64,000 bases of DNA, from contig JAPDFW010000068.1 of assembly GCA_028826165.1 (NCBI GenBank), positions 248,001-312,000 of the forward strand, written 5' to 3'. Origin of the DNA: Anaeramoeba ignava BMAN (Eukaryota > Protista > Anaeramoebae). Made by a program: the position numbers and the translations under genes. Each line of letters begins with the position of its first letter. Positions within the stretch are counted from its first letter, which is position 1. The notes under the pieces were generated by a model, which had not been told where the DNA came from, made no database searches, and saw only the letters and a list, made by a program, of their open reading frames with translations. This document shows, one piece after another, positions 14,679 to 44,600 of the stretch.

Positions 14679-14912
14679 ATCACGCAATTCCAAAATTTAT
14701 CACTTTCTTTCTTCTTTTTTCTTTGCTTTTTCTTTTTTTTCTTTTTCTTTTCTTGATTTTTTCAAACGAGAAATTCAAAAAAAATGCCAAAAAAATACAC
14801 AAATTTTTGATGGAATTTAATAAAAAGAAGAAAAGATTCCAAAAGAAAAGAAGAACAGGAAAAACTTTTTTTTTTTTTTATTTAAAAAACTGACACGTGT
14901 TAAAAAAAAAAA

Positions 14913-16371
14913 TCAAAAATTCGAAAAAAAATTTTTTTGGGAGAAGGCTTTAAGAAATTTATCCAACATAACAATTTCTCGATCTAAACTTTCATCTCCA
15001 ATTTCTTTCATTTCTTTCAAAAAATATTCTTTAAATTGACGAATTTTTGTTTTTGATTCTTCATCAACTGTTTCTTTATCTAAAATTTGATGAACAAAGG
15101 AAACATAACGGATTAAAAGAATTCCTTTTCTTGCCATTAAATCTTGGAAATGGTCATTTTCATCATTCTTTTCCAAAATATCCAAAAAATTGATTGTTTG
15201 AGAATCAACAAATTCTTGACCCTTTGTGTCTTTATAAGAAGTAATAAGTTTAAAAGGAATTCCATCAGAAACCGAACTTGCGAGTTTGAGAATAATCACA
15301 CCACCTTCAGTTTCGTTTTTCATTTCTATCCCCAGGCATGACAGTCGAGATATCAATAAGATTGTCTTCAGATTTGATAAAGAGTATCTTCATGATCAGG
15401 GAGAACCATAAACATTCAGTATTTGTACACCTTCGGTTTTGATTTTCAAATCAAATGCAATGGGAGTAACAATAAAATCAAATTCCTTCTCCATTTTCCT
15501 TCGGAATTCAGACGCAGAATTGACACTCAAATAATTAGCTCCTTTTGTTTTTGTGATTGCGTTGCAAAGCTCAGTATTGAAATCTACTCCAATTCCAACA
15601 AGTGTGATATAGATGTCTTGTTGAGAGTATTTTTTGGATAAACCTAGTAAACCTGTGGATGAAAACTCTCCTGTGTTTGGATGCGCATCGGTCAAGAAAA
15701 TCACTCGATTTTGGAAAAGATCTTTTTTCGTCTTCATTTGCTTCAGATTGTCTTGAATAAGAGCAACTCCCTCTCTGAATCCCAGCGACATATCGGTTCC
15801 TCCTCTTGGTTTCAACTTGTCAATTTTTTGATACAACTTTTTTTTATTGATTGATTTCCATTCTTGAGATTTTTGGATCAAATCAGTTTCGTTATCAAAA
15901 ACAATCATTCCAAAATGATCATCAGGCTTCAACTGAGCAGTTAATCCTTTTCAAAAAGCGCGTTTTGCAATTTCCAGTTTGTCAAGCGAACGTTCAAGTT
16001 CGTTTCTTGATCATTTTTGGATCGTCTTTCGTCTGATTGAATAAATGAAGATCCCATTGATCCAGAAATATCAAGTACAATCACAATATTCAATTTGGGT
16101 CTTCCAAGTGTTTTTGATTCTTCTCCATCGTACTTGGATGTTACTAGCACTGCTGCATAATATTCTTTCTCGTTTGACTTTTTGAGGGTTCTTTGTAATT
16201 GCGCATTTTGTTGATATTGTTAAAATGTTTTCACTTGATTTTCCACTTATTGGAAAATAATATTCATTTATTAATCCATTAAATGTAATTGAAGATTTAG
16301 GTGGTAAATATGAATATGAAAAGATTTGAACGGAAATTTGTTATATCAATTGCTCCTCCAAATGATTCCAT
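14913..16371 (-). CDS. Intronless VWA-domain protein of a prokaryote-type family (YfbK-related); frameshifted
   Basis: ATG at 16371, MESFGGAIDITNFR..YLPPKSSITFNGLINEYYF; LNIVIVLDISGSM (MIDAS DxSxS), PRGGTDM, RVIFLTDAHPNTG, GIGVDFNTEL..I.KTKGANY, spread over 3+ frames. Confidence 0.8.
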
Positions 16372-16554: not shown

Positions 16555-19290
16555 TTAAGCTCCAGGACCAACTCTTAAACCATAACCAAAAAGATAAGTA
16601 TTAGAAATATAATCAATTTCAGCACTTAATTTAAAAGAGATGAGTGGATGAAGCATTTGTTCAACAAGTGTTGAAATTTTTCCATTTGATGTAATTTGAC
16701 CACCAACTTTTATCTAAATTTTTCAATAAATTTTAAAAATCAATTTTTCAATCAATTTTTCAATAATTTTTTCAATAAATTTTTCAATAATTTTTTCAAT
16801 AATTTTTGAATAAATTTTAAAGTAAATTTTGAAATAAATTTTGAAGTAAATTTTGAAGTAAATTTTAAAGTAAATTTTAAAGTAAATTTAAAAGTAAATT
16901 TAAAAGTAAATTTTAAAGTAAATTTTAAAGTAAATTTTGAAGTAAATTTTAAAGTAAATTTAAAAGTAAATTTAAAAGTAATTTTAAAAGTAAAATTTAA
17001 ATAAATTTAAAAGTAAATTTACTAAAGTAAATTTTAAAATAAATTTAAAAACAAATTTAAAATAAATTTAAAAAGTAAATTTAAAAAGTAAATTTAAAAG
17101 TAAATTTAAAAAGTAAATTTAAAAATAAATTTAAAAAGTAAATTTAAAAGTAAATTTAAAATAAATTTAAAAAATTTAAAAGTAAATTTTAAAATAAATT
17201 TAAAAATAAATTTTTAAAAATAAATTTAAAAGTAAATTTAAAAGTAAATTTAAAAATAACCTTGAAAATAAATTTAAAAGTAAATTTTTGAAATAAATGA
17301 AAAAATAAATTTAAAAATAAATGAAAAAAATTAAATTTAAAAGTAAATTTAAAAGTAAATAAAAGTGCTAACCTTTAAAAGTAAATTTAAAAGTAAATTT
17401 AAAGTAAATTTAAAAGTAAATTTAAAGTAAATTTAATTCGTTAAAGTAAATTTAAAGTAAATTTAAAGTAAATTTAAAAGTAAATTTAAAAGTAAATTTT
17501 GAAATAGATTTTAAAATAAATTTTAAAGTAAATTTAAAAATAAATTTAAAAATAAATTTAAAAGTAAATTTAAAAGTAAATTTAAAAGTAAATTTAAAAG
17601 TAAATTTTAAAGTAAATTTAAAAGTAAATTTTGAAATAAATTTAAAATAAATTTTAAAATAAATTTAAAAAGTAAATTTTGAAATAAATTTTAAAATAAA
17701 TTTAAAATGCGCAATTTAAAAGTAAATTTTCAGGCCAAATTAAAAATAAAATTTAAAAATAAATTTTAAAGTAAATTTAAAAGTAAATTTTAAAATAAAT
17801 TTAAAAATAAATTAAAAGTAAATTTAAAAGTAAATTTTAAAATTTTTAAAGTAAATTTAAAAGTAAATTTTGAAATAAATTTAAAATAATTTTTTCAATA
17901 AATTTAAAAATAAATTTTGAAATGAATTTAAAAGTAAATTTAAAAGTAAATTTAAAAGTAAATTTAAAAGTAAATTTAAAGAGTAAATTTAAAAATAAAT
18001 TTTAAAAATAAATTTAAAAAGTAAAATTTAAAAGTAAATTTAAAAGTAAATTTAAAAGTAAATTTAAAAAGTAAATTTTAAAGTAAATTTAAAAGTAAAA
18101 TTTAAAAGTAAATTTAAAAGTAAAATTTTAAAGTAAATTTAAAAGTAAATTTAAAAGTAAATTTAAAAGTAAATTTAAAAGTAAATTTAAAAGTAAATTT
18201 AAAAGTAAATTTAAAAGTAAATTTTGTTTTGTATTTTTTGTTGTGAATAAAAAATTTTGTTGATTAATTTTTGTTAAAAGAATTAAAAACAAACCTGACG
18301 CAAAGAATATAGATAACCAGCACTCATAGCACTTAAACCATTTTCAATATTATAAATAAACTCAGCAGCCAAACCGACTCTAGGAGTAATTTTTTGGACA
18401 TAATGAAGAGAAAAATGTTTAACAGGAAAAGTAGAAAAACTAGAAGTAAAAATAAAATTATGGGTAAAATAACGACTTGCAAAAATAATAGATGAAGTTT
18501 TCATATTGTGATAATAAATAAATTCCATTCCAAGATTTAAACGAGGTGTCATTGCTTGAAGATAAGATAATCCAAATACTTTGTTTGATTTCAATTTCGA
18601 TTGAATCGTGAAATTTTCTCCATAATATTCTAAATCTGCTCCAAATGTATCTTGTGAATCTTCTTGTTTTTTTCCTGATATTTGTGTGTATAATGTTGTT
18701 AGAAATTTCCTTCCAAATTGTTGTATATATCTTGCATATGTTCCATCATTTTTTCTGTTTCCAATTAAAGCATACTTTTTAAATTTTAATTTTAATTTTA
18801 TAAATGAATTTTAATTTTAAATTTAATTTTGATTTTAATTTTAATTTTAATTTTAATTTAAATTTAATTTTAGTTTTAATTTTAATTTTAAATTTAATTT
18901 TAATTTTAATTTTAATTATAATTCTAATTTTAATTTTAATTTTAATTTTAAATTTAATTTTAAATTTAATTTTAATTTTGATTTTAATTTTATTAAAATA
19001 TAAAAATAACAAACTTTTTCTTGAACATAATTAGCACCAAAAGTATAAGAAGGTTCTTCACGTAAAGAACCCATTGATAAAGCATGAGTTAAACCAAAAG
19101 ATTGATTCATTTGTTGATTAACTTCAAGTCTAAAACCATCAAAAGTTTCAACATTAAGAATTTGAGTTGATTCTTTACAAAATTGTTCAAATTTTCCTGG
19201 ATTTGTTAATTTAAATGTGTTTTCTAATGGGATTTCAACTTTTGTTTCTTGACTTCTACTTTCTTTTGTTTTTTTAACTTGATTCCCCAT
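16555..19290 (-). CDS. TOM40: TOM40 outer-membrane protein import channel (mitochondrion or mitochondrion-related organelle); 3 exons
   Basis: Exons 19290-19015, 18774-18295, 16713-16555; MGN start, NPGKFEQFCKE..FDGFRLEVNQQMNQSFGLTH, GLSYLQAMTPRLNLGMEF, C-terminal beta-signal FGYGLRVG. Confidence 0.92.
16714..18294. repeat. TOM40 intron 2 (1.58 kb) filled with 12-bp (AAAAGTAAATTT)n
   Basis: Directly visible between GT and AG on the minus strand. Confidence 0.9.
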
Positions 19291-23333: not shown

Positions 23334-26300
23334 TTATTTTTTTTTGGTAATAATTTTCTTTCTGATAATTTTTTGAATTTGTTTTGGTTTTTCAGATAAT
23401 ATTTTTGGTTGAGAAACTGTTTTTGGTTGATTTTGAGAAACTGCTCTTTTTTGAGTTCTTGAAACTTTTGGTTTTTCATCAGTTGAAGGTTGTTTAGTTT
23501 TTTTTAATTTAGAAGGAACAATAACTTTTTTAGTTAATTTTGAAGGAGTTCTTTTTATAATTTTTGGTTTTTGATTTGAATCTTTTATTTCATCATTTGA
23601 ATCTTTTATTTGCTCATTTGAATCTTTTATTTCATCATCTGATTTTGAATTTGATTTTGATTTTGATTTTGATTTTGATTTTGATTTTGATTTTGATTTT
23701 GATTTTGATTTTGATTTTGATTTTGTTTCTGATTCTGATTTAGATTTAGATTTAGATTTAGATTTAGATTTAGATTTTAATTTTGGTTCTTCTTTTTCGG
23801 AATCTGTTGAAGAAATTACTAATTCCTCTTTTAAATCTTTTTTTGGTGATTTTGTTTTTTTAATTATTTTTTTTATTGGTGTTTTTGTTGGTGATTTTGT
23901 TGTTGATTTAACTTTTATTGGTAAATTTGTTGATTTGGTTGTTTTTATTGGAGTTTTTGTATTTGATTTTGTGGTTTTCAATTTTGTTGGTGATTTTGTA
24001 TTTGATTTTGTTGGTGATTTTGTTGTTAATTTTGTATTTGATTTTATAGTTTTCAATTTTGTTGGTGATTTTGTAGTTGATTTTGTAGTTTTCAATTTTG
24101 TATTTGATTTTGTATTTGATTTTGTATTTGATTTTATTGGTGTTCCTTTCATAACTGATATTGTTGTTGATTTAACTGGTTTTTTTGGTTGATTTTTTGA
24201 TGGTGTTGATTTTTCAACTGTTGATTTTATTGATTTAAGTTTTTTTGGTTGTTTTACAACTTTTGAAACTTTCTTTTTTCCTGATTCTTTTTGATCTGTT
24301 GATAAATTTTTTGTTTTCACTCCTCCACTTGTTAAAAATGCTGCTCCCATTCCATCTTTCTTAACAACTTGAACACCTGGTTTAAGATGTCTACGAACAA
24401 ATTCATCAAATTTCATATATCCACCACCAACTCTATTCAATATAAATCCTAATAAATTTTTTCAAATCAATTTTTTCAATCAATTTTTTAAATCAATTTT
24501 TTCAATCAATTTTTCAAATCAATTTTTTTAATCAATTTTTTCAATTACCTTCAAGTAATTTCATTTGCATTTTCTTCCCATCAATCTCAAAAACTGATTC
24601 TAATGTTTGTGGATTTGTACTAATTTCTTTAACTGGAACATCAACTCCATATTTTTGGAAAATTCTTTGAATTGTATGCATCATTAATTTTGAGAAACCT
24701 TTTGCATATTCAGGAGAATTCTTATTTGGAATATGAATTTCTATTTTTTGAATGAATTTAAATATTTAAAATAAATATTAAAATAAATATTAAATTAAAT
24801 ATTAAAATAAATATTAAATTAAATATTAAAATAAATATTAAATTAAATATTAAAAATAAATATTAAAATAAATATTAAAATAAATATTAAAATAAATATT
24901 AAAATAAATATTTAAATTATTTAAAATAAATATTTAAAATAAATATTAAAATAAATATTTTAAAATAAATATTAAATTAAATATTAAAATAAATATTAAA
25001 TTAAATAAAAATAAATATTAAAACAAATATTAAAATAAATATTAAAATAAATATTAAAAATAAATATTAAAATAAATATTAAAACAAATAAACATTAAAA
25101 CAAATATTAAAAACAACATTAAAAATAAATATTAAAATAAATATTAAATTAAATATTAAAACAAAATAAAATAAAAATCAACATAAATATTTAAATATTA
25201 AAAAACAATATTAAAACAAATTAAAAATAAAATATTTAAAATAAATAATAAACAACATTAAAATTAAATATTTAAAATAAATATTAAAAACAAATATTGA
25301 AATAAAAATTAAAATATTAAATATTAAAATAAATATTAAAACAAACAAAATCAAATATTTAAAAATAAATATTAAAATAAACATTAAAATAAATATTAAA
25401 AACAACATAAAATAAATATAAAAACAAATATTAAAAACAAAATATAAAAATAAATATTAAAAATAACATTAAAATAAATATTAAAAAATAAATATTAAAA
25501 ACAAATATTAAAATAAATATTAAAAAATAAACATTAAAAACAAACATTAAAAAAATAAATATTAAAAAAAAATATAAAAAATAAATATTAAAAACAAATA
25601 TAAAAAAAAAATATAAAAAAAAATATTAAAAATAAATATTAAAATAAATATAAAAACAACATTAAAATAAATATTAAAATAAATACATAAAAATAAATAT
25701 TAAAATAAATATTAAAATTAAATATTAAAAATAAAAACTATAAAATTAAAATATTAAAACCATAAAAAATAAAAAAAATAAATATTAAAATAAATAAAAA
25801 TTAAATATTAAAAATAAATATTAAATTAAATATTAAAATAAATATAAAATTAAATATTTAAAATAAATATTAAAATAAATATTAAAATAAATATTAAATT
25901 AAATATTAAATATTAAATTGAAAATATACTTTTGCTTCGACTCCATTCTCTCTGAACCTTGTTTTGAAAATTGTTTCTAACTTGAATTTGATGATTTCCT
26001 GGATTGACTTTATCCAAAATAGCAAAATTATCAAGTAGTCATAATATTGAGTATTATCAACATTCTACTCATATTTATAATTTGCCAACCTAGAATTTGG
26101 GGTATCCCAAGTAAGAAATAAATCAGAATAGAATATTCCTTTGATTTTACTCGTGTGCAGAATTTTTCAATTTTGATTGGAATTGGATCACTCCATTCTC
26201 CCCTTCTGAAAAATCATTCTTTTGCTCAGAAAACATATTGTTTCTGTTGAAAGTTTGGATAATGTTATTTCTGGTGTTTTGTTTTTGTAATTAAGCGTAC

Positions 26301-29300
26301 TTCTTTTTGGGATTAAGGCCTTTTCCATTTCATCTTCCCTTCTAGATTCCATTTTTACTGCTTTTCCCATCCAATTTCATTTTATTTTGATCTTGTTGTT
26401 TTATTTTAGATATCTTTTCTGGTTTTGGATCAATTAGCAATTTCTGGAGATTTGACCATTCTCCATTTTTAGCTCTTATTCTTATTGAATAATTTTCTGA
26501 TGGTTTATGTTTTCAATAATAAATTTTGGTTTTTCACTTTCTTCAATAATTTCATTATTAACTTCAATTTCATATTTTTCAATTTCACTTCCTTCATTTT
26601 TAAGGGTTCTTTCCATTTTAATTCAATTTCATTTAATTTGGGTTCAACTTCAATTTCTTCTATTCTTCAGGTTCTTTTATCATCAGTTTTGGTTTTAATT
26701 TCATTACTCCATTCTGCTTCTCCTTTGGAATTTTTAGCTCTTATTCTTATTGAATAATTTTCTGATGGTTTTATGATTTTCAATAATAAATTTTGGTTTT
26801 TCACTTTCTGCAATAATTTCATTATTAACTTCAATTTCATATTTTTCAATTTCACTTCCTTCATTTTTAGGTTCTTTCCATTTTAATTCAATTTCATTTA
26901 ATTTAGGTTCAACTTCAATTTCTTCAATTTTTTCAGGTTTTTTATCTTCAGTTTTGGTTTTAATTTCATCACTCCATTCTGCTTCTCCTTTGGAATTTTT
27001 TGCTCTTATTCTTATTGAATAATTTTCTGATGGTTTTATGTTTTCAATAATAAATTTTGGTTTTTTACTTTCTGCAATAATTTCATTATTAACTTCAATT
27101 TCATATTTTTCAATTTCACTTCCTTCATTTTTAGGTTCTTTCCATTTTAATTCAATTTCATTTAATTTAGGTTCAACTTCAATTTCTTCAATTTTTTCAG
27201 GTTTTTTGTTTTTCTGATTTGTTTTAGTTTTTAATTTCATTCTTTTAATTCAATTTCATTCTGCTTCTCCTTTGGAATTTTTAGCTCTCTTATTCTTATT
27301 GAATAATTTGTTTTCGATGGTTTTAAATTTTCAATAATAAATTTTGGTTTTTTACTTTCTCCAATAATTTCATTATTTACTTCCAATTTCATATTTTTCA
27401 ATTTCACTTCCTTCATTTTTGGGTTCTTTCCATTTTAATTCAATTTCATTTAATTTAGGTTCAACTTCAATTTCTCTCAATTTTTCAGGTTTTTGTTTTT
27501 GTTTTAGTTTTTAATTTCATCACTCCATTCTGCTTCTCCTTTGGAATTTTTAGCTCTTATTCTTATTGAATAATTTTCTGATGGTTTTATATTTTCAATA
27601 ATAAATTTTGGTTTTTTACTTTCTCCAATAATTTCATTGTTTACTTCAATTTCATATTTTTCAATTTCACTTCCTTCGTTTTTAGGTTCTTTCCATTTTA
27701 ATTCAATTTCATTTAATTTGGGTTCAACTTCAATTTCTCGTATCTTTTCAGGTTCTTTATCATCTGTTTTAGTTTTAATTTCATCACTCCATTCTGCTTC
27801 TCCTTTGGAATTTTTAGCTCTTATTCTTATTGAATAATTTGTTGATGGTTTTAAATTTTCAATAATAAATTTTGGTTTTTTACTTTCTGCAATAATTTCA
27901 TTATTAACTTCAATTTCATATTTTTCAATTTCACTTCCTTCGTTTTTAGGTTCTTTCCATTTTAATTCAATTTCATTTAATTTAGGTTCTACTTCAATTT
28001 CTTCTATCTTTTCAGGTTTTTTATCTTCAGTTTTGGTTTTAATTTCATTACTCCATTCTGCTTCTCCTTTAGAATTTTTAGCTCTTATTCTTATTGAATA
28101 ATTTTCTGATGGTTTTATATTTTCAATAATAAATTTTGGTTTTTTACTTTCTCCAATAATTTCATTATTTACTTCAATTTCATATTTTTCAATTTCACTT
28201 CCTTCATTTTTAGGTTCTTTCCATTTTAATTCAATTTCATTTAATTTGGGTTCAACTTCAATTTCTTCTATCTTTTCAGGTTCTTTATCATCAGTTTTAG
28301 TTTTAATTTCATTACTCCATTCTCCTTCTCCTTTGGAATTTTTTGCTCTTATTCTTATTGAATAATTTTCTGATGGTTTTATATTTTCAATAATAAATTC
28401 TGGTTTTTCACTTTCTGCAATAATTTCATTATTAACTTCAATTTCATATTTTTCAATTTCACTTCCTTCATTTTTGGGTTCTTTCCATTTTAATTCAATT
28501 TCATTTAATTTGGGTTCTACTTCAATTTCTCGTATCTTTTCAGGTTTTTTATCATCTGTTTTAGTTTTAATTTCATCACTCCATTCTGCTTCTCCTTTGG
28601 AATTTTTTGCTCTTATTCTTATTGAATAATTTGTTGATGGTTTTATATTTTCAATAATAAATTCTGGTTTTTCACTTTCTCCAATAATTTCATTATTAAC
28701 TTCAATTTCATATTTTTCAATTTCACTTCCTTCATTTTTAGGTTCTTTCCATTTCAATTCAATTTCATTTAATTTGGGTTCAACTTCAATTTCTCGTATC
28801 TTTTCAGGTTCTTTATCATCAGTTTTAGTTTTAATTTCATCACTCCATTCTGCTTCTCCTTTGGAATTTTTAGCTCTTATTCTTATTGAATAATTTGTTG
28901 ATGGTTTTAAATTTTCAATAATAAATTTTGGTTTTTTACTTTCTGCAATAATTTCATTATTAACTTCAATTTCATATTTTTCAATTTCACTTCCTTCGTT
29001 TTTAGGTTCTTTCCATTTTAATTCAATTTCATTTAATTTAGGTTCTACTTCAATTTCTTCTATCTTTTCAGGTTTTTTATCTTCAGTTTTGGTTTTAATT
29101 TCATTACTCCATTCTGCTTCTCCTTTAGAATTTTTAGCTCTTATTCTTATTGAATAATTTGTTGATGGTTTTATATTTTCAATAATAAATTCTGGTTTTT
29201 CACTTTCTCCAATAATTTCATTATTAACTTCAATTTCATATTTTTCAATTTCACTTCCTTCATTTTTAGGTTCTTTCCATTTCAATTCAATTTCATTTAA

Positions 29301-32300
29301 TTTGGGTTCAACTTCAATTTCTTCAATTTTTTCAGGTTCTTTATCATCAGTTTTAGTTTTAATTTCATCACTCCATTCTGATTCTCCTTTGGAATTTTTA
29401 GCTCTTATTCTTATTGAATAATTTGTTGATGGTTTTAAATTTTCAATAATAAATTCTGGTTTTTCACTTTCTCCAATAATTTCATTATTAACTTCAATTT
29501 CATATTTTTCAATTTCACTTCCTTCGTTTTTAGGTTCTTTCCATTTTAATTCAATTTCATTTAATTTGGGTTCAACTTCAATTTCTCGTATCTTTTCAGG
29601 TTTTTTGTTTTTGGTTTTGGTTTTAATTTCATCACTCCATTCTCCTTCTCCTTTGGAATTTTTAGCTCTTATTCTTATTGAATAATATGTTGATGGTTTT
29701 ATGTTTTCAATAATAAATTCTGGTTTTTCACTTTCTGCAATAATTTCATTATTAACTTCAATTTCATATTTTTCAATTTCACTTCCTTCATTTTTAGGTT
29801 CTTTCCATTTTAATTCAATTTCATTTAATTTAGGTTCAACTTCAATTTCTTCTATCTTTTCAGGTTCTTTATCATCAGTTTTAGTTTTAATTTCATCACT
29901 CCATTCTGCTTCTCCTTTGGAATTTTTAGCTCTTATTCTTATTGAATAATTTTCTGATGGTTTTATGTTTTCAATAATAAATTCTGGTTTTTCACTTTCT
30001 CCAATAATTTCATTATTTACTTCAATTTCATATTTTTCAATTTCACTTCCTTCATTTTTAGGTTCTTTCCATTTTAATTCAATTTCATTTAATTTAGGTT
30101 CAACTTCAATTTCTCGTATCTTTTCAGGTTTTTTGTTTTTGGTTTTGGTTTTAATTTCATCACTCCATTCTCCTTCTCCTTTGGAATTTTTAGCTCTTAT
30201 TCTTATTGAATAATTTGTTGATGGTTTTATGTTTTCAATAATAAATTTTGGTTTTTCACTTTCTCCAATAATTTCATTATTAACTTCAATTTCATATTTT
30301 TCAATTTCACTTCCTTCATTTTTGGGTTCTTTCCATTTTAATTCAATTTCATTTAATTTAGGTTCAACTTCAATTTCTCGTATCTTTTCAGGTTCTTTAT
30401 CATCTGTTTTGGTTTTAATTTCATCACTCCATTCTGCTTCTCCTTTGGAATTTTTAGCTCTTATTCTTATTGAATAATTTTCTGATGGCTTTAAATTTTC
30501 AATAATAAATTTTGGTTTTTCACTTTCTCCAATAATTTCATTATTAACTTCAATTTCATATTTTTCAATTTCACTTCCTTCATTTTTAGGTTCTTTCCAT
30601 TTTAATTCAATTTCATTTAATTTGGGTTCAACTTCAATTTCTCGTATCTTTTCAGGTTCTTTATCTTCAGTTTTGGTTTTAATTTCATTACTCCATTCTG
30701 CTTCTCCTTTAGAATTTTTAGCTCTTATTCTTATTGAATAATTTGTTGATGGTTTTATGTTTTCAATAATAAATTTTGGTTTTTCACTTTCTCCAATAAT
30801 TTCATTATTAACTTCAATTTCATATTTTTCAATTTCACTTCCTTCATTTTTGGGTTCTTTCCATTTTAATTCAATTTCATTTAATTTGGGTTCAACTTCA
30901 ATTTCTTCTATCTTTTCAGGTTTTTTATCTTCAAATTCTCTTTTAATTTCATCAGGCTATTTTTTAAAAAAAAAATAAAATAAATTGATAAATTCATAAT
31001 TAAATGAATGAAATCACCTCAAAATATTAAATCAAATATTACATTATTTAATGAATAATTTCGAAAATATGATAAATAAGTTAAGACTGATAAAGCATCT
31101 ATTGAATCAGTTAAAAGATCTTTTGGTTCAAGTAGTTTTGGTATTTCCATTAATTCATTTGCTTTATCAAATGCGAGTCCGAGATTTTCTTGAGCATTAT
31201 CCTTTATTATATAAAAAATAATTTGGGGAAAATGGATTTGAGTTAATTTTCAAAAAGAAAATCAAAGAATAGAAACCTTTGATAATTGGGAAATTTGGAT
31301 ATTTCCTGGTTTTTGCTTTTCAACCAAACAACAAAGAGCAATTCCATCATTTAAACTAAATTTTATAAATAAATAATTTTTATTGTTATTAAATTATTAT
31401 TATTTATTTTTTTTTTGTTGTGATTTTTACTCATCTGTTAAATTTCGAATTTGAACTCCAAAATCATTTATTCTTGATAGAATCCATTCAAGCATCATCT
31501 TTTGTGTTGAATTTGTTTCTGAATCGTCTCCCTGTGAAATTTGATATCTTCGAATCAAAATCCAGATTAATCCCAAAATAATCTTTAAATTTTCCTTGAT
31601 TAAATCTTTTTAATTTTAATTTTAATTTTGATTTTAAATTTGATTTTAATTTTGATTTTAATTTTAATTTTGATTTTAATTTTGATTTTGATTTTGATTT
31701 TGATTTTGATTTTGATTTTGATTTTGATTTTGATTTTTATTTTTATTTTGATTTTAATTTTGATTTTAATTTAAATTTGATTTTGATTTAAATTTAAATT
31801 TTGGTTTTGATTTTGATTTTAATTTTAATTTTAATTTTAATTTTAATTTTAATTTTAATTTTAATTTTGATTTTGATTTTGATTTTGATTTTGATTTTAA
31901 TTTTAATTTTGATTTTGATTTTGATTTTCAATTTGATTTTTAATTTTGATTTTGATTTTAATTTTGATTTTGATTTTGATTTTAATTTTGATTTTAAATT
32001 TTAATTTTAAATTTGATTTTGATTTTAATTTTGATTTTGATTTTGATTTTGATTTTAATTTTGATTTTGATTTTGATTTTAATTTTGATTTTGAAACAAA
32101 CCTTCACCACCAACATTGACAAGACGAGGTTCTTTTGGTAATCTTTCTGAATCAACAAAATCGATTCCAATTTTACAATTCTCAAGTTTTTGAGCATAAA
32201 CTCTTGGGCGAGGACTATATCTTTGAGGACATTTTTTTATTGCTAAAATTTCCATTAAATTTATTAAAATTACACCACTTGCAAAGTCTGTTCTTGCGTC

Positions 32301-33858
32301 TTCAATTTGAAGATTTCTTTTTTGAAGATGTAAATTACACCAACGAGTAAAAACCTAATTTAAAAAATTTAATCCAAAATTATTATTTTATTTATAATTT
32401 TATTTATAATTTAATTTATAATTTAATTTATAATTTAATTTATATTTTTATTTATAATATTATTTATAATTTAATTTATAATTTAATTTATAATTTTATT
32501 TATAATTTGATTTATAATTTAATTTATAATTTTATTTATAATTTTATTTATAATTTTATTTATAATTTATTTATAATTTAATTTATAATTTAATTTATAA
32601 TTTTATTTATAATTTTATTTATAATTTTATTTATAATTTAATTTATAATTTTATTTATAATTTTATTTATAATTTTATTTATAATTTTATTTATAATTTT
32701 ATTTATTATTTTATTTATAATTTTATTTATAATTTAATTTATTATTTTATTTATAATTTTATTTATAATTTAATTTATAATTTTATTTATAATTTTATTT
32801 ATAATTTTATTTATAATTTTATTTATAATTTAATTTGTGATTTTATTTATAATTTAATTTATAATTTTATTTATAATTTTATTTATAATTTTATTTATAA
32901 TTTTATTTATAATTTTATTTATAATTTAATTTGTGATTTTATTTATAATTTAATTTATAATTTTATTTATAATTTTATTTATAATTATATTTATAATTTT
33001 ATTTATATTTTTATTTATAATTTAATTTATAATTTTATTTATAATTTTATTTATAATTTTATTTATAATTTTATTTATAATTTTATTTATAATTTTATTT
33101 ATAATTTTATTTATAATTTAATTTATATTTTTATTTATAATTTTATTTATAATTTTATTTATAATTTTATTTATAATTTTATTTATAATTTTATTTATAA
33201 TTTTATTTATAATTTTTATTTATAATTTAATTTATAATTTTATTTATAATTTAATTTATAATTTTATTTATAATTTTATTTATAATTTTTATTTATAATT
33301 TTATTTATAATTTTATTTATAATTTAATTTATAATTTTATTTATAATTTTATTTATAATTTTATTTATAATTTTATTTATAATTTTATTTATTATTTAAT
33401 TTATAATTTTATTTTATAATTTAATTTATAATTTTATTTATAATTTTATTTATAATTTAATTTATAATTTTATTTTATAATTTTATTTATATTTTTGTTT
33501 ATAATTTTATTTATAATTTTATTTATAATTTAATTTATAATTTTATTTATAATTTATTTATAATTTTATTTATAATTTTATTTATAATTTATTTATAATT
33601 TAATTTATAATTTTATTTATAATTTAATTTATAATTTTATTTATAATTTTATTTGTAATTTTATTTATAATTTAAAAAGAATTTTGCTTTTTTTTATTGA
33701 AATTTGTTGTTGTTGTTTATTTGTTTTGGATCTTATTTTATTTTTATTATTTTTAATCATTAAACTATTTTAATTCTTACTCGTATTTGTGTTTGAATCC
33801 ATTGAGGTAATTTTGTTATGTCTTTTTCGTTGTAAATATCTTTTGTTGATCTTGACAT
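23334..33858 (-). CDS. Giant cytolinker: actinin-type CH1-CH2 actin-binding domain, ~17-19 FN3 repeats, GAR (GAS2-like) domain, Lys/Ser/Thr-rich tail
   Basis: Exons ~33858-33781, 32354-32102, 31605-31431, 31355-31277, 31201-31022, 30956-25930, 24740-24548, 24448-~23334; WIQTQIRVFTRWCN, LKIILGLIWILIRRYQI, NDGIALCCLV, SVLTYLSYF; 88-aa FN3 units; FILNRVGGGYMKFDEFVRRH. Confidence 0.85.
26410..30930 (-). repeat. 17 near-identical 264-bp coding repeats (88-aa FN3 domains)
   Basis: Unit PEKIEEIEVEPKLNEIELKWKEPKNEGSEIEKYEIEV...YSIRIRAKNSKGEAEWS; repeat starts spaced 264 bp from ~30916 to ~27484, then ~27197, 26933, 26667. Confidence 0.95.
32355..33780. repeat. Intron 1 of the cytolinker filled with 10-bp (TTTATAATTT)n
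   Basis: Directly visible. Confidence 0.9.
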
Positions 33859-34603: not shown

Positions 34604-36171
34604 TTAAAAGTAGAAAGTTTCGACTTCATCAATTTCCCAAACAATAGAACCAGATAGATAACTTAAGGCCTCAGCCTTTTTAAGTTTGATTCCTTTAGGA
34701 AGATTATAAGTTTCTCCAAAATTTGAACGACCAATTCCTAAACTAAATGGGAAAGAAATATCACCTCTTCCAAAAATTGGACCACTTTTTCATTATAAAT
34801 AATAGCTCTTTTTCTTCACCTTTTTAATTGGAAATTTCTCTGGTTTTCTATTGTTCTTATCATTTCTTAATGAAAAAGAAAAGCATCTGGATCACAAATT
34901 CTTCTTGATTCAAATACTTGATCTTCATTCCATTTTGATTTATCAGTTATAAATCCAACTTTTGTAAATCCTCCAAAAATAAAATTATCTTTTGTTTTGA
35001 TAATAACTAATGTGTTTTCACAATCATCACAAAGTTCGTGCCATTTTCGAGTAGAGAATCCAATATAATGCGTTGAAAATCCTAATTGAACATTGTAAAA
35101 GATTTTGTCATCATTGATCCATTTTCTTAATTTTTGGATGTATCTTTTTTTTTTAATAATTCTGGATTTAAAATTTAATCTTGGATTGAAAATCAGAAAA
35201 TTTTCTTTTTCTTCATCTTCATCTTCATCTTCATCTTCATCTTCATTTTCATTTTCATCTTTTTCTTTTTTTGCTTTTTCTTCTTCTTCTTTTTCTTTTG
35301 CTTTTGCTTTTTCTTTTTTAATAAATTTTTTAATTTTTTTTTCATCTTTTTTTGTTTTTAATGTTAATAACTTTTTTAACTTTCGTGAAATTTGATTTGG
35401 AATTAAATCTTCTTTCAAAGTTTTTTGAAGTTCTTTTTTGGGAAAATCAATAAATCTGATTTTTTGAATAACGTTTGAAATTTGATCTTGTAATTTTTCT
35501 TTTTCTTTTTTATTAAGTTTTGAATTTGCCTTTTTTTGATTAATATTTGATTTGTGTCTTCCCCATTTTATTACTGATTGGAAAAGTTCAACTTCATTTC
35601 CTAAAAAGCAATTACTTGCTAGAAATGGAATTAATTGATTTTCTTCAAGTTCAAGAAAAAATGAAGTTTTGGAAAATTCTTTAAAATGATCCAAAATAAA
35701 TTGGTAACAATAATGCAGTAATAGATTCAAGTCCATTGACTCAGATAGTTTAAGAACATCAACAACAGTTTCAAATTTTAAATTGTTTTTGATAAAATCT
35801 GAAGAAGTTTCAATTAATTCATCAATTAAATATTTTGTTGAAAAAATTAAAATTTGAACTGCGTTTTCTGAATTAAATTCAATTTTTCCTGAATAAAGAT
35901 AATTCAAAATTGAGGATAGAATTGAACTTGAAACATCTTTTAGAATCAATTTGTCTTCTTGAAGTTCTTTCGTTTTGGATTTAAAAAGAGATTTGAAATA
36001 TTCGCTTCTTGAAGAAAGAATTGATTTATGAGTTTTAAATGAAGTTTTGTTTTGTTCACAAATTATTTCAAAATCAAAATAACTTTCTTCATCTTTTTCA
36101 TTTTGGTTTTGATTTTGAAATAAATTTTTTAAATCATTTGAAAGTTTTTCTAAATTTGAATAATTTTCCAT
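34604..36171 (-). CDS. BTB/POZ-BACK-TLDc protein, copy 1 (intronless; frameshift near the C-terminus)
   Basis: DFEIIC..FKTHKSILSSRSEYFKSLF..ILNYLYSG (BTB); ELFQSVIKWG (BACK); WHELCD..TLVIIKTKDNFIFGGFT..DAFLF, GPIFGRGD, IDEVETFYF* (TLDc). Confidence 0.88.
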
Positions 36172-36250: not shown

Positions 36251-37828
36251 TCAAAAATTAAAAAGTAAATGCACATCTTCATTCAAAGCTTGATTCAAAA
36301 CCTGCTCTAATTTATATAAGGGAACATTCATATTTATTCCAATAGGTTCTCCATAGATTCTCCAATAAGGACTTCCAGTTGAATGAGATATCCACCAAAA
36401 AATAGGTCTTGAACCAATTTCTATTTGAGTTTGGAATTCAATGATGATAGGATGAGATAAAGTGAAAATCAAATTATAAAGAGCTCCACCATGCCCTCCA
36501 ATTATAATTTTGCTGATCCAAAAATCGACTAAATTTTTCAAGTCGAAAAATCTTGATGATAAAAATTTTGAATTTGTCACCAAATCTCATTTGTAGATAA
36601 TTTTCAATTTCTTTTTGAATTCAAAACTTCTCTTTTATTTGAATTATTAACTCTTGGAAGATAAATAACATTTTCGGGAATATAGTCCCTAATTTGGTGA
36701 TCTGAATCTGTTTCCAAAATATTCTTGAGAAGAAAAATTTTAGATTCATAAATCAACTGGGGATTCCAAATAGTGGCGCTACAAGCCATCAGGAACTCGT
36801 CAACATCATATCTCACATTTTTGATAAAACTCAATTTCCACATTAAAATCTTTTTGACCAAATTCAAAAAGCATCAACATTTTTGTCTGCTGGGCGTAAA
36901 GCAAGAATTGTATATCCTTTATCTTTTATAAAGGGGTCTTGCTTGCATTAAGGGGGATAAAGCATGATCTATCCAGTGCTGAAAATAATTGGAGCGTGCG
37001 GGAGTGATGAGTGCAAGTTTTTCGAAATGTTTGACATTTTGAGAAGTTGGTTTCTGGAAAGAGTTCATTGTAGTTGTTTCCAAACATTCCGGAAGTTTAT
37101 CAAAACTAAAATTCTTGACAAATGTTTCATTTCCTGTTGTGAAGTAAGGTGTTGTCATACTTGATACAAATTTTTCGCAATCACCTGGTGCCATTGGAGG
37201 CTTATCTCTCTCATCACAAAACATATCATAGGATTCTTGATCCAAAAAATTTGGAGTATCAAGATAAAAAGATTCAAAATCCAAATGATAAAGTATTTCG
37301 TTGTCAGAAACTATTGTTTTTGAAATTTTGGGTCGATCTTCATATCTTTCATACTTGATAAACCTTGTATCTTCTTCAGTATGATAAAAATAGGGATTTT
37401 GATAATGATATAAATTCAAGTCATAAAAATCTGAAAATGGATCATCTATTGAAGGTGTTTTATTTGATTGAGAATCTCGATAACGTTTGAGTTTTTTTTG
37501 CAATGAATTGAGTTGATTTTCAAATTGTATCATTTTTTTTGACATTTCTATTAATTCTTTGTTTTTTCATTTTAAAATCAGATTGTAGTTTGCCAATTAT
37601 TGAATTTGTGTTTTCCCCTGTTTTTGATCTTTTAATTGATTGATTTATTGATTAATTGATTGATTAATTGATTGATTAATTTTTACCATTTGGAATTGAA
37701 CGAACAGAAAGAAATAAAATTAACAAAAATCCAATTAATAGCGCTATTAATAAAATAAAAACTTTATTACAAAGAATACTCTTTAATAAACTTGTGTTAG
37801 ATAATTCAAAAACTTTTTTTCGATACAT
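36251..37828 (-). CDS. Type II membrane glycosyltransferase, GT61/DUF563-like; frameshifted
   Basis: ATG at 37828, N-terminal TM FILLIALLIGFLLILFL, intron ~37687-37619; NYFQHWIDH, VIYLPR..KREVLN, IIIGGHGGALYNLIF..IIEF (GPHGAG.N-type motif). Confidence 0.7.
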
Positions 37829-37918
37829 TTAAAAAACGAAAAAATGAAAAAATGAAAAAATCTTTTTTAGAAAAATGATCCAAAAATATTTTCTAATTGA
37901 TTTTTGTGGTTTTTTTTT

Positions 37919-39388
37919 TTAAAAGAAAAAAGTTTCAAGTTCATCAACTTCCCATTGATCATAAGAACCAGCTAAATAACTATTTGCTTCAATTGTATCA
38001 TGTTTAATTCCATTAGGAAGATTGTAAGTTCGACCAAAATTCGAATAACCAGATTTTAAATTAGGGATTTAAACCGAAATCACCATCTCCAAAATTCGGA
38101 CCAGAATTTGGATAATAAGTAATAGCCAAATTCTGAGGATATTTTTAATTGGAAATTTCTCTGATTTTCTATTATTTTTATCATTTCTTAATGAAAAAGA
38201 AAAGCGTCTCGATCAAAAATAAATCCACAATTTGATTTTTCATCTTCATAATTCCATTTTGATTTATCAGTTGTAAATCCAACTTTTGTAAATCCTCCAA
38301 AAATAAAATTATCTTTTGTTTTTGATAATAACCAGTGTTTTTCCTTTATCGTCACAAATATCATGCCAATTTTCACAATCAAATCCGTCCTCTTTTGCTG
38401 AAAATCCGAGTTCCATATCGGAAAAGATACTGTCGTCATTTATCCATTTTTTTAATTTATTGAAATGCTCAACTTTTTAATAATTTTGGATTCAAAATGG
38501 AATCTTGATTTGAAAATGAATGAATGCTGTTTTTAATAAATTTTTAATTCCTTTTTTATCTTTTTTTGTTTTTAATGTTAATAATTTCATTAACTTCCGT
38601 GAAATTTGATTTGGAATTAAATCTTCTTTCAAGATTTTTCAAGTTCTTTTTGGAAAAATCAATAAATCTGATTTTTGAATAATATTTGAAATTTGATCTT
38701 TGCAATTTTTTCTTTTTCTTCTTTTTCAAGCTTTTCATTTTCCTTTTTGATTAATATTTGATTTATGCTTTCCCCATTTTATTATTGATTGGAAAATTCC
38801 AAATTCGTTTGTTAAATTATAATTACTTGATAGAATTGAATTTAAATGATTTTCTTCAAGCTCAAGAAAAAATGGAGTTTTGATAAATTTTTCAAAATTT
38901 TCCGAAATAAATCTATAAGAAGAATCCAATAATTGATTTAAATTCATTGACTCAGATAATTTAAGAATATCAACAATATTTTCAAATTGGAAATTGTTTT
39001 TGATAAAATTAGAAGAAGTTTCAATTAATTCATCAATTAAATATTTTGATGAAAAAAGTAAAATTTGGATTGCATTTTCTGAATTAAATTCAATTTTTCC
39101 TGAATAAAGATAACTCAAAATTGAGGATAGAATTGAACTTGAAAAATCTTTTAGAATCATTTTATTTTCTTGATACTCTTTCATTTTGGATTTAAAAAGA
39201 TATTTAAAGTATTGACTTCTTGAAGAAAGAATTGATTTATGAGTTTTAAATGAGATTTTATTTTGTTCACAAATTATTTCAAAATCAAAATAACTTTCTT
39301 TTTCATTTTCATTTTCATTTTGATTTTGATTTTGAAATAAATTTTTTAAATCATTTGAGAGTTTTTCTAAATTTGAATAAGTTTCCAT
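37919..39388 (-). CDS. BTB/POZ-BACK-TLDc protein, copy 2 (paralogue of 34604-36171; several frameshifts)
   Basis: METYSNLEKLSNDLKNLFQ.. closely matches copy 1; TKDNFIFGGFTKVGF..DAFLF, GPNFGDGD, WEVDELETFF. Confidence 0.85.
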
Positions 39389-39487
39389 CTTTAAAAATGA
39401 AAAATGATAAAAAAAAATTCGAAAAAAAAAATTTTTCCTTTTTTCATTTTTCATTTTTTTTCCCGAAATAAAAATAATAACAATAAA
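39389..39487. promoter_or_regulatory. 99-bp bidirectional promoter with outward-facing TCATT (Inr-like) motifs around a central TTCGAA
   Basis: ATGs at 39388 (-) and 39488 (+); AATGA copies at 39396-39407, TTCATT copies at 39443-39456, AAAATTCGAAAA at ~39414-39425. Confidence 0.6.
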
Positions 39488-41453
39488 ATGAATAACCAAG
39501 AAAATCCTGAAGAAAAAAACCAAAAAGAAAATCCAAATCAAAATGAACAAGAAAAGAAAAAAATTGAAAATAAAAATATTAAGAAAATTCAAGAAAACGA
39601 TAACATTTTAACAAATAAAGAAGAAAATACTGAAAATCAAACAAAAACAACATCAACAACAACAAGAAGATTAATCCGACTTACGCCTCAAAGAAAATAT
39701 TTAAGTGATAGGTTTCATATATCACAACAAAATAGTCCTGATTCAAAAAGAACTCAAAGCCAAGATTTTATCCAAAACTTAATATCAGAATCAGAAATGA
39801 GATCAAAAAATAACGAACCAAAATTAAACATAAAAACATCAATTCTTAATTACAAAAATTTAATAAGTGATGTTTCAGTGATTCCATTAAGTGACTTATT
39901 AAAAATCATTTATTTTTCTATTGAAGAGACTGAAAAAAATGGAGAGAATACAGGATATCAATTTGTTCTTCAGTGCGCTGATGAAGCATTAAATAAAATG
40001 AAAAGATTAAAAATCCAAATCCAAATCCAAATCCAAATCAAAATCCAAATCCAAATCAAAATCCAAATCCAAATCAAAATCAAAATCAAAATCATAAATC
40101 AAAATTAAAAATGGATCAAAATTTAATCTCATCATTGAATTATATTTCAGCAATTTGCTTTTATCGATTAAATGAGTTTGAAAAGGCAAATGCAAAAATC
40201 AATGATTATCTTTCGATGAATAAAAAATGCAGAAATGGATTTTTACTTCAATGTTTAATTAGCATGAAAAGAAAGGATTATAAAAAAGCAAAAAATGCTT
40301 TAAGAAAAGCACAAAAATCACATCAAACAAATGAATTTCCAAATTATTTTGCGATTGTATCAGCTCATTTATATTTTTACACTCAGGAATCATCGAAAAA
40401 GCAGAGAGTGAATTGGATAAAATATTCCTGGAAAATGTTGAAAAAATGTCTTTTGATTTAATTAAAAGTTCAACAGAAAATAATCAAAAAGATTTTTTGA
40501 ATTTTATCAAAATGAAGATGTATAATCATAATTGGGATCAAGTCGAAAAGATATTGGAAAAATATAAAAAGAATAATAAAAACGCTGAGATATTGAGTTA
40601 TTTAGGGATTTGTTATTTCAAGAAGCAATACACATCAAAAAAAGTTGTTCAAGTATTTCAAATGGTGAAAAAAATACAACAAAATCAAGAAAATCAAGAA
40701 AATCAAGAAAATCAAGAAAAAGAACAAAATCAAAATCAAAATCAAAATCAAAATCAACAAAATCAACAAAATCAAAATTTAAATCAAAATTTAAATCAAA
40801 ATCAAAATCAAAATTTAAATCAAAATCAAAATCAAAATCAAAATCAAAATCAAAATCAAAATCAAAATCAAAATCAAAATCAAAATCAAAATCAAAATTT
40901 AAATCAAAATCAAAATTTAAATCAAATTGATAATTCTAATATTAAAGAGAATTGGTATTTTGTAATGCAATATTATTGGGCAAAAGCATTTTTAGATGAA
41001 ATTACTATTGAATTTAGTCACTTACTAAATCGTCAATTACAAAATAAGAAGAAAAGATTAAGTCCCAGAAAAAGTAGACAAAACACTCCAAATTCAAAAA
41101 TTCAAAAAAAAGTTTTACCAAAAATTAAAAACGCAATTTCTCATCTTGATGAAGCAATAAAGAATAATAATAATATTCAACATACAAAGTTTTATTACAC
41201 AAGAGCTTATGCTTATTATCTTTATTTGAATTTACAAAAGATGGGAATTATCGAGATTTGGGTCTTAAAGATCTTAAAAACTGCATCAAAATTAACTTCA
41301 AAACAAGAAAAGATTAAACAATTATCTGATTTATTTAATATTAAACCAAAATCAAAAACCAAATTTCTTCTTCTTCTTTTTCTTTTTAAATCCAAAAATC
41401 TAATTGAAAAATTTATATTAATTTTTTCTTTTTTCTTTTTTCTTTTTAAATAA
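39488..41453 (+). CDS. TPR-like helical repeat protein with N/Q-rich linkers; frameshifted
   Basis: Three consecutive ORFs with TPR-like helices (YISAICFYRLNEFEKA, SMKRKDYKKAKNALRKA, LSYLGICYFKK, FYYTRAYAYY). Confidence 0.55.
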
Positions 41454-41620: not shown

Positions 41621-44600
41621 ATGTTTGCTCTTCAATTCTTATTTTCTTTAATTTTGGTTTTTGTTGTTAATTCTATTTTAATTCGTAAATTAAATTATTT
41701 TTTTTTATTTTTTTTTTTACTGGTTCAAAAAACAAACAAAACACACAAACAAAACAAAATACACAAAAACAAAACACAAATTTATATTTATATTTATATT
41801 TATATTTATTTAAATTTATATTTATATTTATAATTATATTCTTAATTTATATTTATATTTATATTCTTAATTTATATTTATATTTATATTTATATTTATA
41901 TTTATAATTATAATTATATTTATATTTATATTTATATTTATATTTATATTTATATTTATATTTATATTCTTAATTTATATTTATATTTTATATTTTATTT
42001 TTTTTATATTTATATTTATATTTTATATTTATATTTATATTTTATTTATTTTTATATTTATATTTAATTAATTTATATTTATATTTATATTTATAATTTA
42101 TTTATATTTATATTTATATTTATATTTATATTTATATTTATTTATATTCATATTTTTTTATTTTTTATATTTATATTTAGATTTTATATTTTTATTTATA
42201 TTTATATTTATATTTATATTTATATTTATATTTATATTTATATTTATATTTTATATTTATATTTATATTTTTTATATTTTATATTTATATTTATATATTT
42301 ATATTTATATTTATATTTTATATTTATATTTATATTTTATATTTATATTTATATTTTATATTCTTAATTTATTTATATTTATCATATATTTTATATTTAT
42401 ATTTTAAATTTATATTTTAATATTTTATTTTTATATTTATATTTATATTTATATTTAAATTTATATTTATATTTTATATATTTTAATTTAATTATAATTA
42501 TATTTCATATTTTATATTTATATTTATATTTATAATTATATTTATATTTATATTTATTTTATATTTTATATTTTATATTTCATATTTATATTTTATATAT
42601 TTTTATATTTATATTTTATATTTTATATTTATATTTATATATTTATATATTTATATTTTATATTTTATATTTATATTTTATATTTTATATTTATATTTAT
42701 AATTTATATTTATATTTTATAATTATATTTTATATTTTATATTTATATTTATATTTTATTTAAATTTATATTTTATTTATATTTATATTTTATATTTATA
42801 TTTTATATTTATATTTATATTTATAATTTATATTTATATTTATTTTTATATTTTATATTTATATTCTTAATTTATTTATAAATTTATATTTATATTTATA
42901 TTTATTTATTTTATATTTTAATTTATATTTTTACATATTTTATATTTTATATTTATATTTTATATTTATAATTATACATTTATATTTTATATTTATATTT
43001 ATATTTATATTTATATTTATATTTATATTTTATTTATTTTATATTTATATTTATATTTATATTTATATTTATATTTTATATTTATATTTATATTTATATT
43101 TATATTTATATTTTATATTTATATTTATATTTTATATTTATATTTATATTTATATTTATATTTATATTTATATTTATATTTATATTTATATTTATATTTA
43201 TATTTATATTTTATATTTATATTTATATTTTATATTTATATTTTTATATTTATATTCTTAATAGATTTATATTTATATTTTTATAATTATATTTATATAT
43301 TTTATATTTTATATTTTATATTTATATATTTTAATTTTTATTTATATTTATATTTATATTTATATTTATATTTATATTTATATTTATATTGATATTTATA
43401 TTTATATTTATATTTATATTTATATTCTTAATTTATATTTATATTTATAATTATAATTATATTTATATTTATATTCTTAATTTATATTTATATTAAATCC
43501 AAAAGAAAATGTGATCGATTCGTCATATTTACTAGAAGTATATGAAACACAAGTAATATCACACATCAGATGTAGTAACACTGACTATTTAATTGGAACA
43601 TATGAACATCTTTCATATAAAAGAATTTTCGTTGAAGAATTCATTAACGGGATATACCAGACAGGAAGGGTTTTGGGATCTACAACAACACAATTACATT
43701 TATCAAGCGTTAGTTTAACCGAATTCTGGGGGTATTGCTTTATAACACTAGCAGGAAACGTAACAGGAAGTGGATTCATCGGGACAATTGATGCATATCA
43801 AAACGTAACAGGACCAATTTCATTATCATCAGGATTCATGTATATATATTATCCCCATAGTATTTGGTTCTCAAGCGCCTTTGGAGATGGTTCTTATGAT
43901 TTGGATATATCAGGATTTGAACTTTTCAATGATGGCTACGATTATTTATATCTTCTCCTTTCGGGATATTCTGCAAATACTTTGTTTCCACCACTTCATA
44001 ACCAATTGAGGAATTTTTCGGATGAAAATCAAGAACAAGACGGATTCATGTGTCTTTTCTATTGGGATACAGGAAACTATTTAGATCTTATGTTCAGCAC
44101 TTTCCTCGGAACAACAGCAATGACGAATTTGAGCACTGGAAATCTAGTTGTTTATGAAGAAGAAGGATATCAAATTCCCACTTATTTACTGACTGGATAC
44201 ACAAAAGGCCAACTTTCGTTAATAACGGAATCAACTGCAATTCTCACTTCAAATCCATCACTTTATTCCGGATCTTACTCTTCTTTTATCATCCATTTAA
44301 AATTGACCAATATTACAATTACAACGCTCAACCTACTTTTTGGAATATGGTAGTTTCATCGGCGGTTTGAATGAGGACAGGATCACAAGCTTTACTACTT
44401 ACCAGCAAATCCCCCTCAATCACAAACGGATTCATCTTCTATTTTGCCGGAATCACTAAATCAACTGATTTGATTGATTACATCAAAAACGAACATTCCT
44501 TTTCAAACAAACAAAACATCGACAAGTTACTATTCAGCATTTATTTTCTCGATTGATTCAAATTATTCCTTTTTAAGTGGAACACTTTTTGAGGGACAAA

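Follow-up and report, generated by a model that had tools for sequence, protein, structure and literature searches.

A 64,000-nucleotide stretch of the Anaeramoeba ignava genome (C69:248001-312000, hereafter the window) was analyzed, and one gene was predicted on its minus strand between 33858 and 23334. The gene joins a pair of CH domains, a rod of FN3 domains, a GAR (GAS2-related) domain, and a basic tail. As judged from sequence, this CH-CH, FN3 rod, GAR, and basic tail architecture is a real gene design in this genome and is intact in a paralog on another contig, i.e., C81. The best explanation of the window gene is a large cytoplasmic protein with a tandem CH head, an FN3 rod of 17 near-identical and two diverged domains, a GAR domain without zinc ligands, and a basic tail. 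Such a protein would be an actin-microtubule cross-linker, a reading that we regard as fairly probable. If its frame breaks are read through, the window copy would encode about 2,350 amino acids (aa); its sister copy would reach about 3,000 aa.

The assembly scanned comprised 42.8 Mb in 147 contigs of A. ignava, a free-living anaerobic metamonad (Metamonada). C69 is the contig carrying the window, and C81, C84, C64, and C93 are other contigs of the same genome. The window locus is called copy A, and its inverted sister on C69 is called copy B. Searches were run exon by exon, i.e., with single exons rather than a spliced or joined GAR domain or protein as queries. Paralogous loci were found by scanning the genome in six frames, first with Pfam GAS2 and subsequently with a profile made from the GAR half of the family itself. 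The GC content of the window was 7-36%, a composition that would suit a dictyostelid, but such an origin was rejected because a Ras gene on C64 is identical to KAJ5075794.1 of A. ignava.

Exons and domains of the window gene

Exon 1 (33781-33858) opens with the ATG at 33858, encodes 26 hydrophilic residues (MSRSTKDIYNEKDITKLPQWIQTQIR), and has a GTAAGA donor at its end. The exon is identical in copy B, and a homologous exon is found in the C81 paralog. The N-terminus in its translation was hydrophilic and showed no signal-like segment, as had been stated in an earlier reading made from the letters alone (the sequence-only reading). Most of CH1, the type-1 CH of an actin-binding domain, was placed in exon 2 (32102-32354; Pfam CH 36 bits). 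Exon 3 (31431-31605; phase 1 in, phase 2 out) carries the end of CH1, the linker, and the start of CH2. The middle of CH2 lies in exon 4 (31277-31355; Pfam CH E 0.008), and its C-terminal half in exon 5 (31043-31201; Pfam CH 25.6 bits). The five 5' introns of the gene are all GT-AG and their phases fit.

Pfam CH matches were obtained on four exon pieces of the gene. The best PDB matches of exon 2 were the actin-binding domains of filamin A/B at E ~1e-12, with alpha-actinin next, and the exon was aligned to filamin residues ~22-92, i.e., CH1. Exon 5 was aligned to the CH2 domains of filamin-B (~197-249), alpha-actinin (176-222), and beta-spectrin (229-276). By these matches, exons 1-5 encode a predicted canonical CH1-CH2 actin-binding head of the filamin/actinin type, with canonical spacing. 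The tandem CH of actinin/filamin type that the sequence-only reading had proposed was thereby confirmed, with a CH1 like that of filamin and alpha-actinin and a CH2 like those of spectrin, actinin, and filamin.

From its start at 30956, exon 6 leads straight into a 264-bp tandem array at 26465-30954, with 16.9 copies and 93% matches. The array unit corresponds to one 88-aa FN3 domain. The intact part of the exon (27507-30956) encodes 13 near-identical units in one 1150-aa frame (Pfam fn3 E 3.7e-166, 13 stretches). Units 14-17 follow at 26465-27506, and two diverged FN3 domains follow at 25930-26464, the last one ending at a phase-1 GTATAT donor. The earlier count of 17 near-identical and about two diverged FN3 domains agrees with this array. 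Neighbouring array domains are ~93-97% identical in DNA, which is unusual among tandem-domain proteins. Among the 27 intact FN3 units of copies A and B, the mean dN/dS was 0.24, and the variable codon columns comprised 16 with synonymous changes only and 12 with residue changes. Because of this low dN/dS, the FN3 array is considered to be under purifying selection. Separately, a further open frame with FN3-like motifs (...ITINWNKPNDNGDPITGYY..., ...GNGEWS...) was seen on the plus strand at 45451-46353, and FN3 domains seem common in the A. ignava genome.

The GAR domain is encoded by two exons. GAR exon 1 (24549-24740, 192 nt) encodes its N-terminal half, and GAR exon 2 (23334-24448) encodes the RVGGGY hairpin and helix, the basic tail, and a stop codon, its length being 1112 nt (24448-23337) without the stop codon. 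Together the exons read ...FEIDGKKMQMKLLEG and FILNRVGGGYMKFDEFVRRH..., the GAR-like motif being split by a 100-nt intron at 24548-24449. The tail is 370 aa long, with an isoelectric point (pI) of 10.6 and a content of 28% K, 16% S, and 12% T, in accordance with the basic K/S/T tail described before.

The identity of the GAR domain was approached through the C93 paralog, in which the domain is unsplit. A whole-library HMMER search with the C93 GAR recovered 13 short proteins of uncultured eukaryotes at 36-40 bits. A GAR family profile was built from the C93 domain and these 13 proteins, and all 14 sequences match Pfam GAS2 (best E 7e-11). In the PDB, the profile matched only GAR domains, i.e., ACF7 (2.2e-9, 5e-9) and GAS2 (5e-7, 5e-6). 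GAR exon 2 of the window matched this profile in hhalign at columns 99-119 (93.9%, E 1.6e-7). A profile of the paralogs' GAR exon 1 matched it at columns 41-95, directly before the exon 2 columns (86.5% probability, E 4.6e-6). GAR exon 1 alone gave no Pfam GAS2 match, and phmmer of GAR exon 2 against the PDB gave no GAR match. The AlphaFold model, made of the C93 GAR only, had a pLDDT of 88.9 and the order H-E-E-E-E-E-H (helix, five strands, helix). In Foldseek, this model had 5x57, 1v5r, 9kbw, and 5ve9 within its top five, all of them GAR (probability 0.99-1.00, TM 0.49-0.68). The structures matched were the ACF7 GAR, the GAS2 GAR, the microtubule-bound GAS2 GAR (9kbw), and the ACF7 EF-GAR. 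The Pfam matches, the PDB profile matches, and the predicted fold thus support a putative GAR identity of the family. For the window gene, the assignment is made because of the exon-by-exon profile comparison and the paralogs.

The residues of GAS2 shown by mutation to bind microtubules are R252, G255, W257, and K266 (PMC12084551). By alignment, with RVGGGY...RR set against VRVGGGW...LK, these would correspond to R, G, Y, and R in the window. No cysteine was found in the window GAR exons, and no conserved cysteine column was found in the related protist GAR sequences. Because the zinc-binding cysteines are missing from the family and from its protist relatives, the domain is called a zinc-less GAR variant.

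Paralogs and the FN3-to-GAR connection

Six GAR loci were found in the genome, i.e., two on C69 and one each on C81, C84, C64, and C93. The C81 locus repeats the exon plan of the window gene: a short exon 1 (...KLPQWIRTQMK), four CH exons, an FN3 frame, GAR exons, and a basic tail. Its FN3 frame is 842 aa long with eight diverged fn3 domains (E 5.6e-97), its GAR exon 2 scored 17.3 bits with GAS2, and the locus has no frame break. On C93 (L009:6283-9777), a single open frame of 1165 aa spans FN3 domains, a GAS2 domain, and a tail of low complexity. The FN3 domains of this frame number about seven by eye, and four stretches were matched by Pfam fn3. The GAS2 score was 25.4 bits on a 101-aa GAR piece and 21.3 on the whole frame, with a cut-off of 21.3. 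Immediately upstream of the C93 frame is an unrelated gene, and no CH domain is present. Downstream of the GAR hairpin, the C93 sequence is acidic and N/D/E-rich (pI 5.2), and a canonical SIIP occurs near its C-terminus. C84 has three FN3 domains, a long AT-rich intron, and GAR exons, but lacks CH, and its sequence downstream of the hairpin has a pI of 5.6. C64 is a degenerate copy of the C84 type.

The intron between FN3 and GAR occurs at the same position and in phase 1 in the window gene, C84, and C81. In the window, the donor follows '...EWSRSK' and the acceptor precedes 'IHIPNK', both in phase 1. The intron inside the GAR domain is likewise in phase 1 in these three genes. The window FN3-to-GAR intron (24741-25929) is ~1.19 kb of AT-rich minisatellite with phase-compatible donor and acceptor. 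Its counterpart is ~70 nt in C81 and 0.5-1.2 kb in the C69 copies and C84 (L011:7256-7830; L014:6457-7068). The introns of the C69 copies and C84 appear inflated by AT-rich minisatellite.

Coding conservation of GAR exon 1 reaches the AG acceptor, 19 codons upstream of the first Met of the window exon. GAR exon 1 of C81 has no Met and so cannot start a gene. Because the phase-1 intron is conserved in three paralogs, the coding conservation extends to the acceptor, and the C81 exon lacks a Met, the GAR exons are considered internal exons of FN3 genes and not a gene of their own. The earlier placement of the GAR exons in the same gene as the FN3 domains is upheld by this intron and by the single open frame on C93.

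Proposed role, frame breaks, and competing explanations

In the proposed mechanism, F-actin would be bound by the CH pair, and the microtubule lattice by the GAR hairpin (RVGGG-aromatic) with help from the strongly basic tail. Between them, an FN3 rod of 19 beads in copy A or 26 in copy B would set the distance between actin and microtubules. An FN3 domain is usually 3.5-4 nm long, and a rod of this many beads would for that reason span roughly 70-100 nm. By analogy, the protein would act as a spectraplakin in which the spectrin rod is replaced by a titin-like FN3 rod. The convergent spectraplakin analogue of the sequence-only reading is a reasonable proposal for what the protein may do. The family members without CH, i.e., C93 and C84, would tie microtubules to something else.

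Several results weigh against the cross-linker reading. Array units 1-12 of copy A are exactly 264 bp and in frame, but unit 13 is 263 bp, and the frame ends within it at a TAA (27504-27506). Copy B has 24 array units against 17 in copy A. Its first 15 units are in frame and units 16-21 contain four or five frame breaks, so neither copy is intact as assembled. In the patch at 26500-25925, copies A and B differ by 21 mismatches and 33 gap events, only 10 of which are of homopolymer type; errors usually leave a milder signature, and real decay may be the cause here. With Pfam GAS2 (PF02187), GAR exon 2 of the window alone scored 12 bits (E 0.2), below the cut-off of 21.3. The GAR-like motif of the sequence-only reading is accordingly borne out by the profile comparison and the paralogs, but not by Pfam on the window exon. 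The zinc-binding cysteine motif is held essential for the integrity of animal GAR (PMC12084551), and these cysteines are absent from the window GAR. The SxIP search of the tail found one TNLP against 0.68 expected by shuffling (P 0.5), i.e., chance level. Two EB1 homologues are encoded in the genome; plus-end tracking is nevertheless unsupported, because this sole SxIP-like motif of the tail is no more than chance. Finally, among the sequencing-run records for the genome, from two studies, none was labelled as RNA.

As assembled, the window copy is not translatable as one gene. Indel events numbered eight in unit 14, two in unit 16, and nine in unit 17, with unit 15 intact, and the diverged FN3 units of copy A contain in-frame stops and frameshifts. 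The earlier claim of one minus-strand spliced gene therefore stands for the exon plan, the GT-AG junctions, and the paralogs, but not for the frame. Stops were indeed found in 25930-26500, where a true stop had been proposed as a sign of a separate GAR gene, but the sister copy lacks them.

The sister copy belongs to an inverted segmental duplication on the same contig, which joins window ~14950-45500 to C69:418635-450421 over at least 31 kb at 93-100% identity. The duplication holds the whole CH-FN3-GAR locus, two BTB genes, and neighbouring genes. In unique DNA, the copies are 98-100% identical, and the CH1 exon is identical. In copy B, an intact 301-aa frame (L014:5554-6456) covers the last array unit together with both diverged FN3 domains and ends at the same donor as in copy A. 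When window 36501-38900 was compared with L013:328-2740, 3 mismatches and 29 gap events were counted. All but one of the gap events (28/29) fell in A/T homopolymers, mostly 5-7 long. These indels break a neighbouring 468-aa gene in copy A but not in copy B; the reverse holds for a BTB gene, which is intact in copy A and broken in copy B. For the A. ignava assembly, ABruijn was run on MinION R9.4/R9.5 reads, Racon and Nanopolish were used for correction, and two Pilon rounds followed (PMC11550330). The homopolymer pattern is the signature of an uncorrected R9 Nanopore consensus in a duplicated segment with ambiguous short-read mapping. The frame breaks of copy A (27506-25930), including those in units 14-17, are likely to be residual Nanopore assembly errors in a recently duplicated and poorly polished segment.

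A first alternative is that copy A is a genuinely decayed or truncated duplicate. It would then encode at most CH-CH and 13 FN3 domains without GAR, or nothing, and the full-length role would fall to copy B, C81, or both. The stop at 27504-27506 and the more than 15 frame-breaking lesions down to 25930 fit this view, as does the diverged-FN3 patch, where multi-base indels occur among the gaps and the differences are denser than in the flanks. However, the lesions are private to copy A, and substitutions between the flanks of the two copies amount to less than 1%, which leaves too little time for such neutral decay and makes it implausible. Gap events exceed mismatches, unlike in natural decay, and where other genes of the duplication are broken, in either copy, homopolymer indels are the sole cause. 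In addition, the DNA of GAR exon 2, at ~20% GC, still holds an open frame of 375 codons. Decay of copy A is thus considered improbable, but deserves to be kept in mind.

A second alternative accepts one polypeptide and denies that it links actin to microtubules. The GAR and tail would instead bind membranes, nucleic acid, or another filament, and the FN3 rod would serve as a spring or scaffold, which may relate to the unusual, symbiosome-bearing architecture of Anaeramoeba cells. The missing zinc ligands and the lack of SxIP enrichment in the tail are compatible with this, and so is the acidic sequence downstream of the hairpin in both members without CH. On the other side, the domain retains the RVGGG-aromatic hairpin, a validated microtubule contact, as well as the basic helix residue after it, the predicted C93 GAR fold matches the microtubule-bound GAS2 GAR 9kbw, and the CH pair is of the F-actin-binding type. 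We judge this second alternative to be unlikely.

That the GAR exons and tail form a separate downstream gene from the ATG at 24684, the CH-FN3 gene ending upstream, is very improbable: the 1.19-kb AT-rich gap, an in-frame Met-Met at the start of the Pfam-defined GAR region, and the broken frame upstream of GAR in this assembly would suit it, but the coding conservation upstream of that Met, the shared phase-1 intron that is short in C81, and the contiguous FN3 and GAR on C93 contradict it, and a word search for stand-alone proteins of 206-656 aa gave no match, which is weak evidence.

Comparison with known linkers and genomic surroundings

The cross-linker read from the window shares with spectraplakins, i.e., MACF1/ACF7, dystonin, and Drosophila Shot, the N-terminal tandem CH, the long modular rod, the C-terminal GAR, and a basic S/T-rich tail. 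In contrast to the spectrin repeats of the spectraplakin rod, the rod here consists of FN3 domains, the GAR lacks the zinc-binding cysteines, and the host is a metamonad. In the scanned window and the paralog pieces, Pfam found no spectrin, plakin domain, SH3, EF-hands, or plakin repeats, and fn3 and related Ig-like families accounted for all matches of the rod pieces. The EF-hand pair that directly precedes GAR in spectraplakins was not found by Pfam in the scanned pieces, and the last FN3 leads straight to the GAR exon.

GAS2, GAS2-like proteins, and the CH-GAS2 proteins of Amoebozoa, fungi, and choanoflagellates (PMC9145010) also carry CH and GAR in one protein, with presumed F-actin-microtubule linking. 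The RVGGG-aromatic hairpin of GAS2 that was shown to contact tubulin (PMC12084551) is kept here. However, GAS2-type proteins have one CH (type 3) and no rod, whereas tandem CH1-CH2 and 9-26 FN3 domains between head and GAR are predicted here. Filamin shares a filamin-like actin-binding domain followed by a beta-sandwich rod, and the CH1 of the window gene is closest to filamin A/B. Filamin differs in its Ig-like filamin repeats, its terminal dimerisation domain, and its lack of GAR. Titin shares intracellular FN3 beads, but both CH and GAR are missing from it. The closest GAR sequences found were those of coiled-coil and GAR proteins of uncultured eukaryotes (P0121-P0133; 36-40 bits, 39-58% identity). 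These proteins share the YxFGTKKIY...RVGGGYM motif and have no zinc cysteines. Unlike the window product, they are short fragments or coiled-coil proteins of 77-331 aa, and no CH or FN3 was present in the seven sequences read.

In a published sequence analysis, CH with GAS2 was reported in Amoebozoa, fungi, and choanoflagellates, GAS2 outside Amorphea was reported only in one ciliate, and FN3 was not mentioned (PMC9145010). The Anaeramoeba genome paper mentions neither calponin nor fibronectin (PMC11550330). A full-text literature search found no paper combining GAS2, FN3, and CH, nor one combining GAS2 and Metamonada. Word searches with the window GAR exon 2 and the C93 GAR gave no match, which is weak evidence given the limited length range and words covered. 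With the C81 FN3 frame, a word search yielded nothing beyond generic FN3 proteins, most of them from bacteria and none with CH or GAS2, and this is equally weak. The whole-library HMMER search with the C93 GAR found no FN3-GAR relative; some of the collections seem to hold no A. ignava records, so missing Anaeramoeba orthologues mean little. The ESM Atlas returned only low-score FN3 clusters.

To our knowledge, the CH and GAR linkers of animals (spectraplakins and the GAS2 family), Amoebozoa, and fungi are in every case rodless or built on a spectrin rod. The predicted cytoskeletal linker described here, which combines CH and GAR with an FN3 rod and comes from a metamonad, is a spectraplakin-like design that is new to the literature searched, the new parts being the FN3 rod and the metamonad host. 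The sequence-only reading had called the whole architecture undescribed; this is correct for the rod and the host, but the pairing of CH and GAS2 outside animals had already been reported in silico (PMC9145010).

Across the CH-bearing loci, the FN3 count was ~8 by Pfam on C81, and 19 and 26 in the C69 copies. It is conceivable, and we propose it only tentatively, that an actin-microtubule cross-linker of the spectraplakin type arose independently in metamonads, through insertion of an FN3 rod (bacterial- or titin-like) between a CH pair of the filamin type and a GAR lacking zinc ligands. The rod length would be evolving now by tandem amplification, which would yield rulers of different reach. 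If true, the logic of head, spacer, and tail can be rebuilt with a different spacer, and the GAR domain and CH-GAR cytoskeletal cross-talk are pushed well outside Amorphea. The loci would also offer a natural rod-length series with which the effect of spacer length on cytoskeletal coupling could be studied. What tubulin binding truly requires is put to the test by the GAR variant without zinc ligands. For users of the public assembly, its frame-breaking errors in duplicated or repeated loci mean that gene models there are not to be trusted.

BTB-BACK-TLDc genes adjoin the locus at window 34867-36171 and 38735-39592. Paralogous BTB genes lie beside the GAR paralogs on C64 (L012:8696-9901) and C81 (L010:8405-9901), which suggests that the BTB and GAR gene families were duplicated together. 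Open reading frames of a DDE transposase were seen at 9992-14178, and window 12000-14954 is 97% identical to C68:366667-369621. This DDE-transposase element borders the inverted duplication, which would fit recent activity of a mobile element. Dispersed repeats were seen at window ~41780-43495 and ~16716-18000, with tens to more than 100 matches on many contigs at 65-90% identity, and they are probably further mobile-element families.

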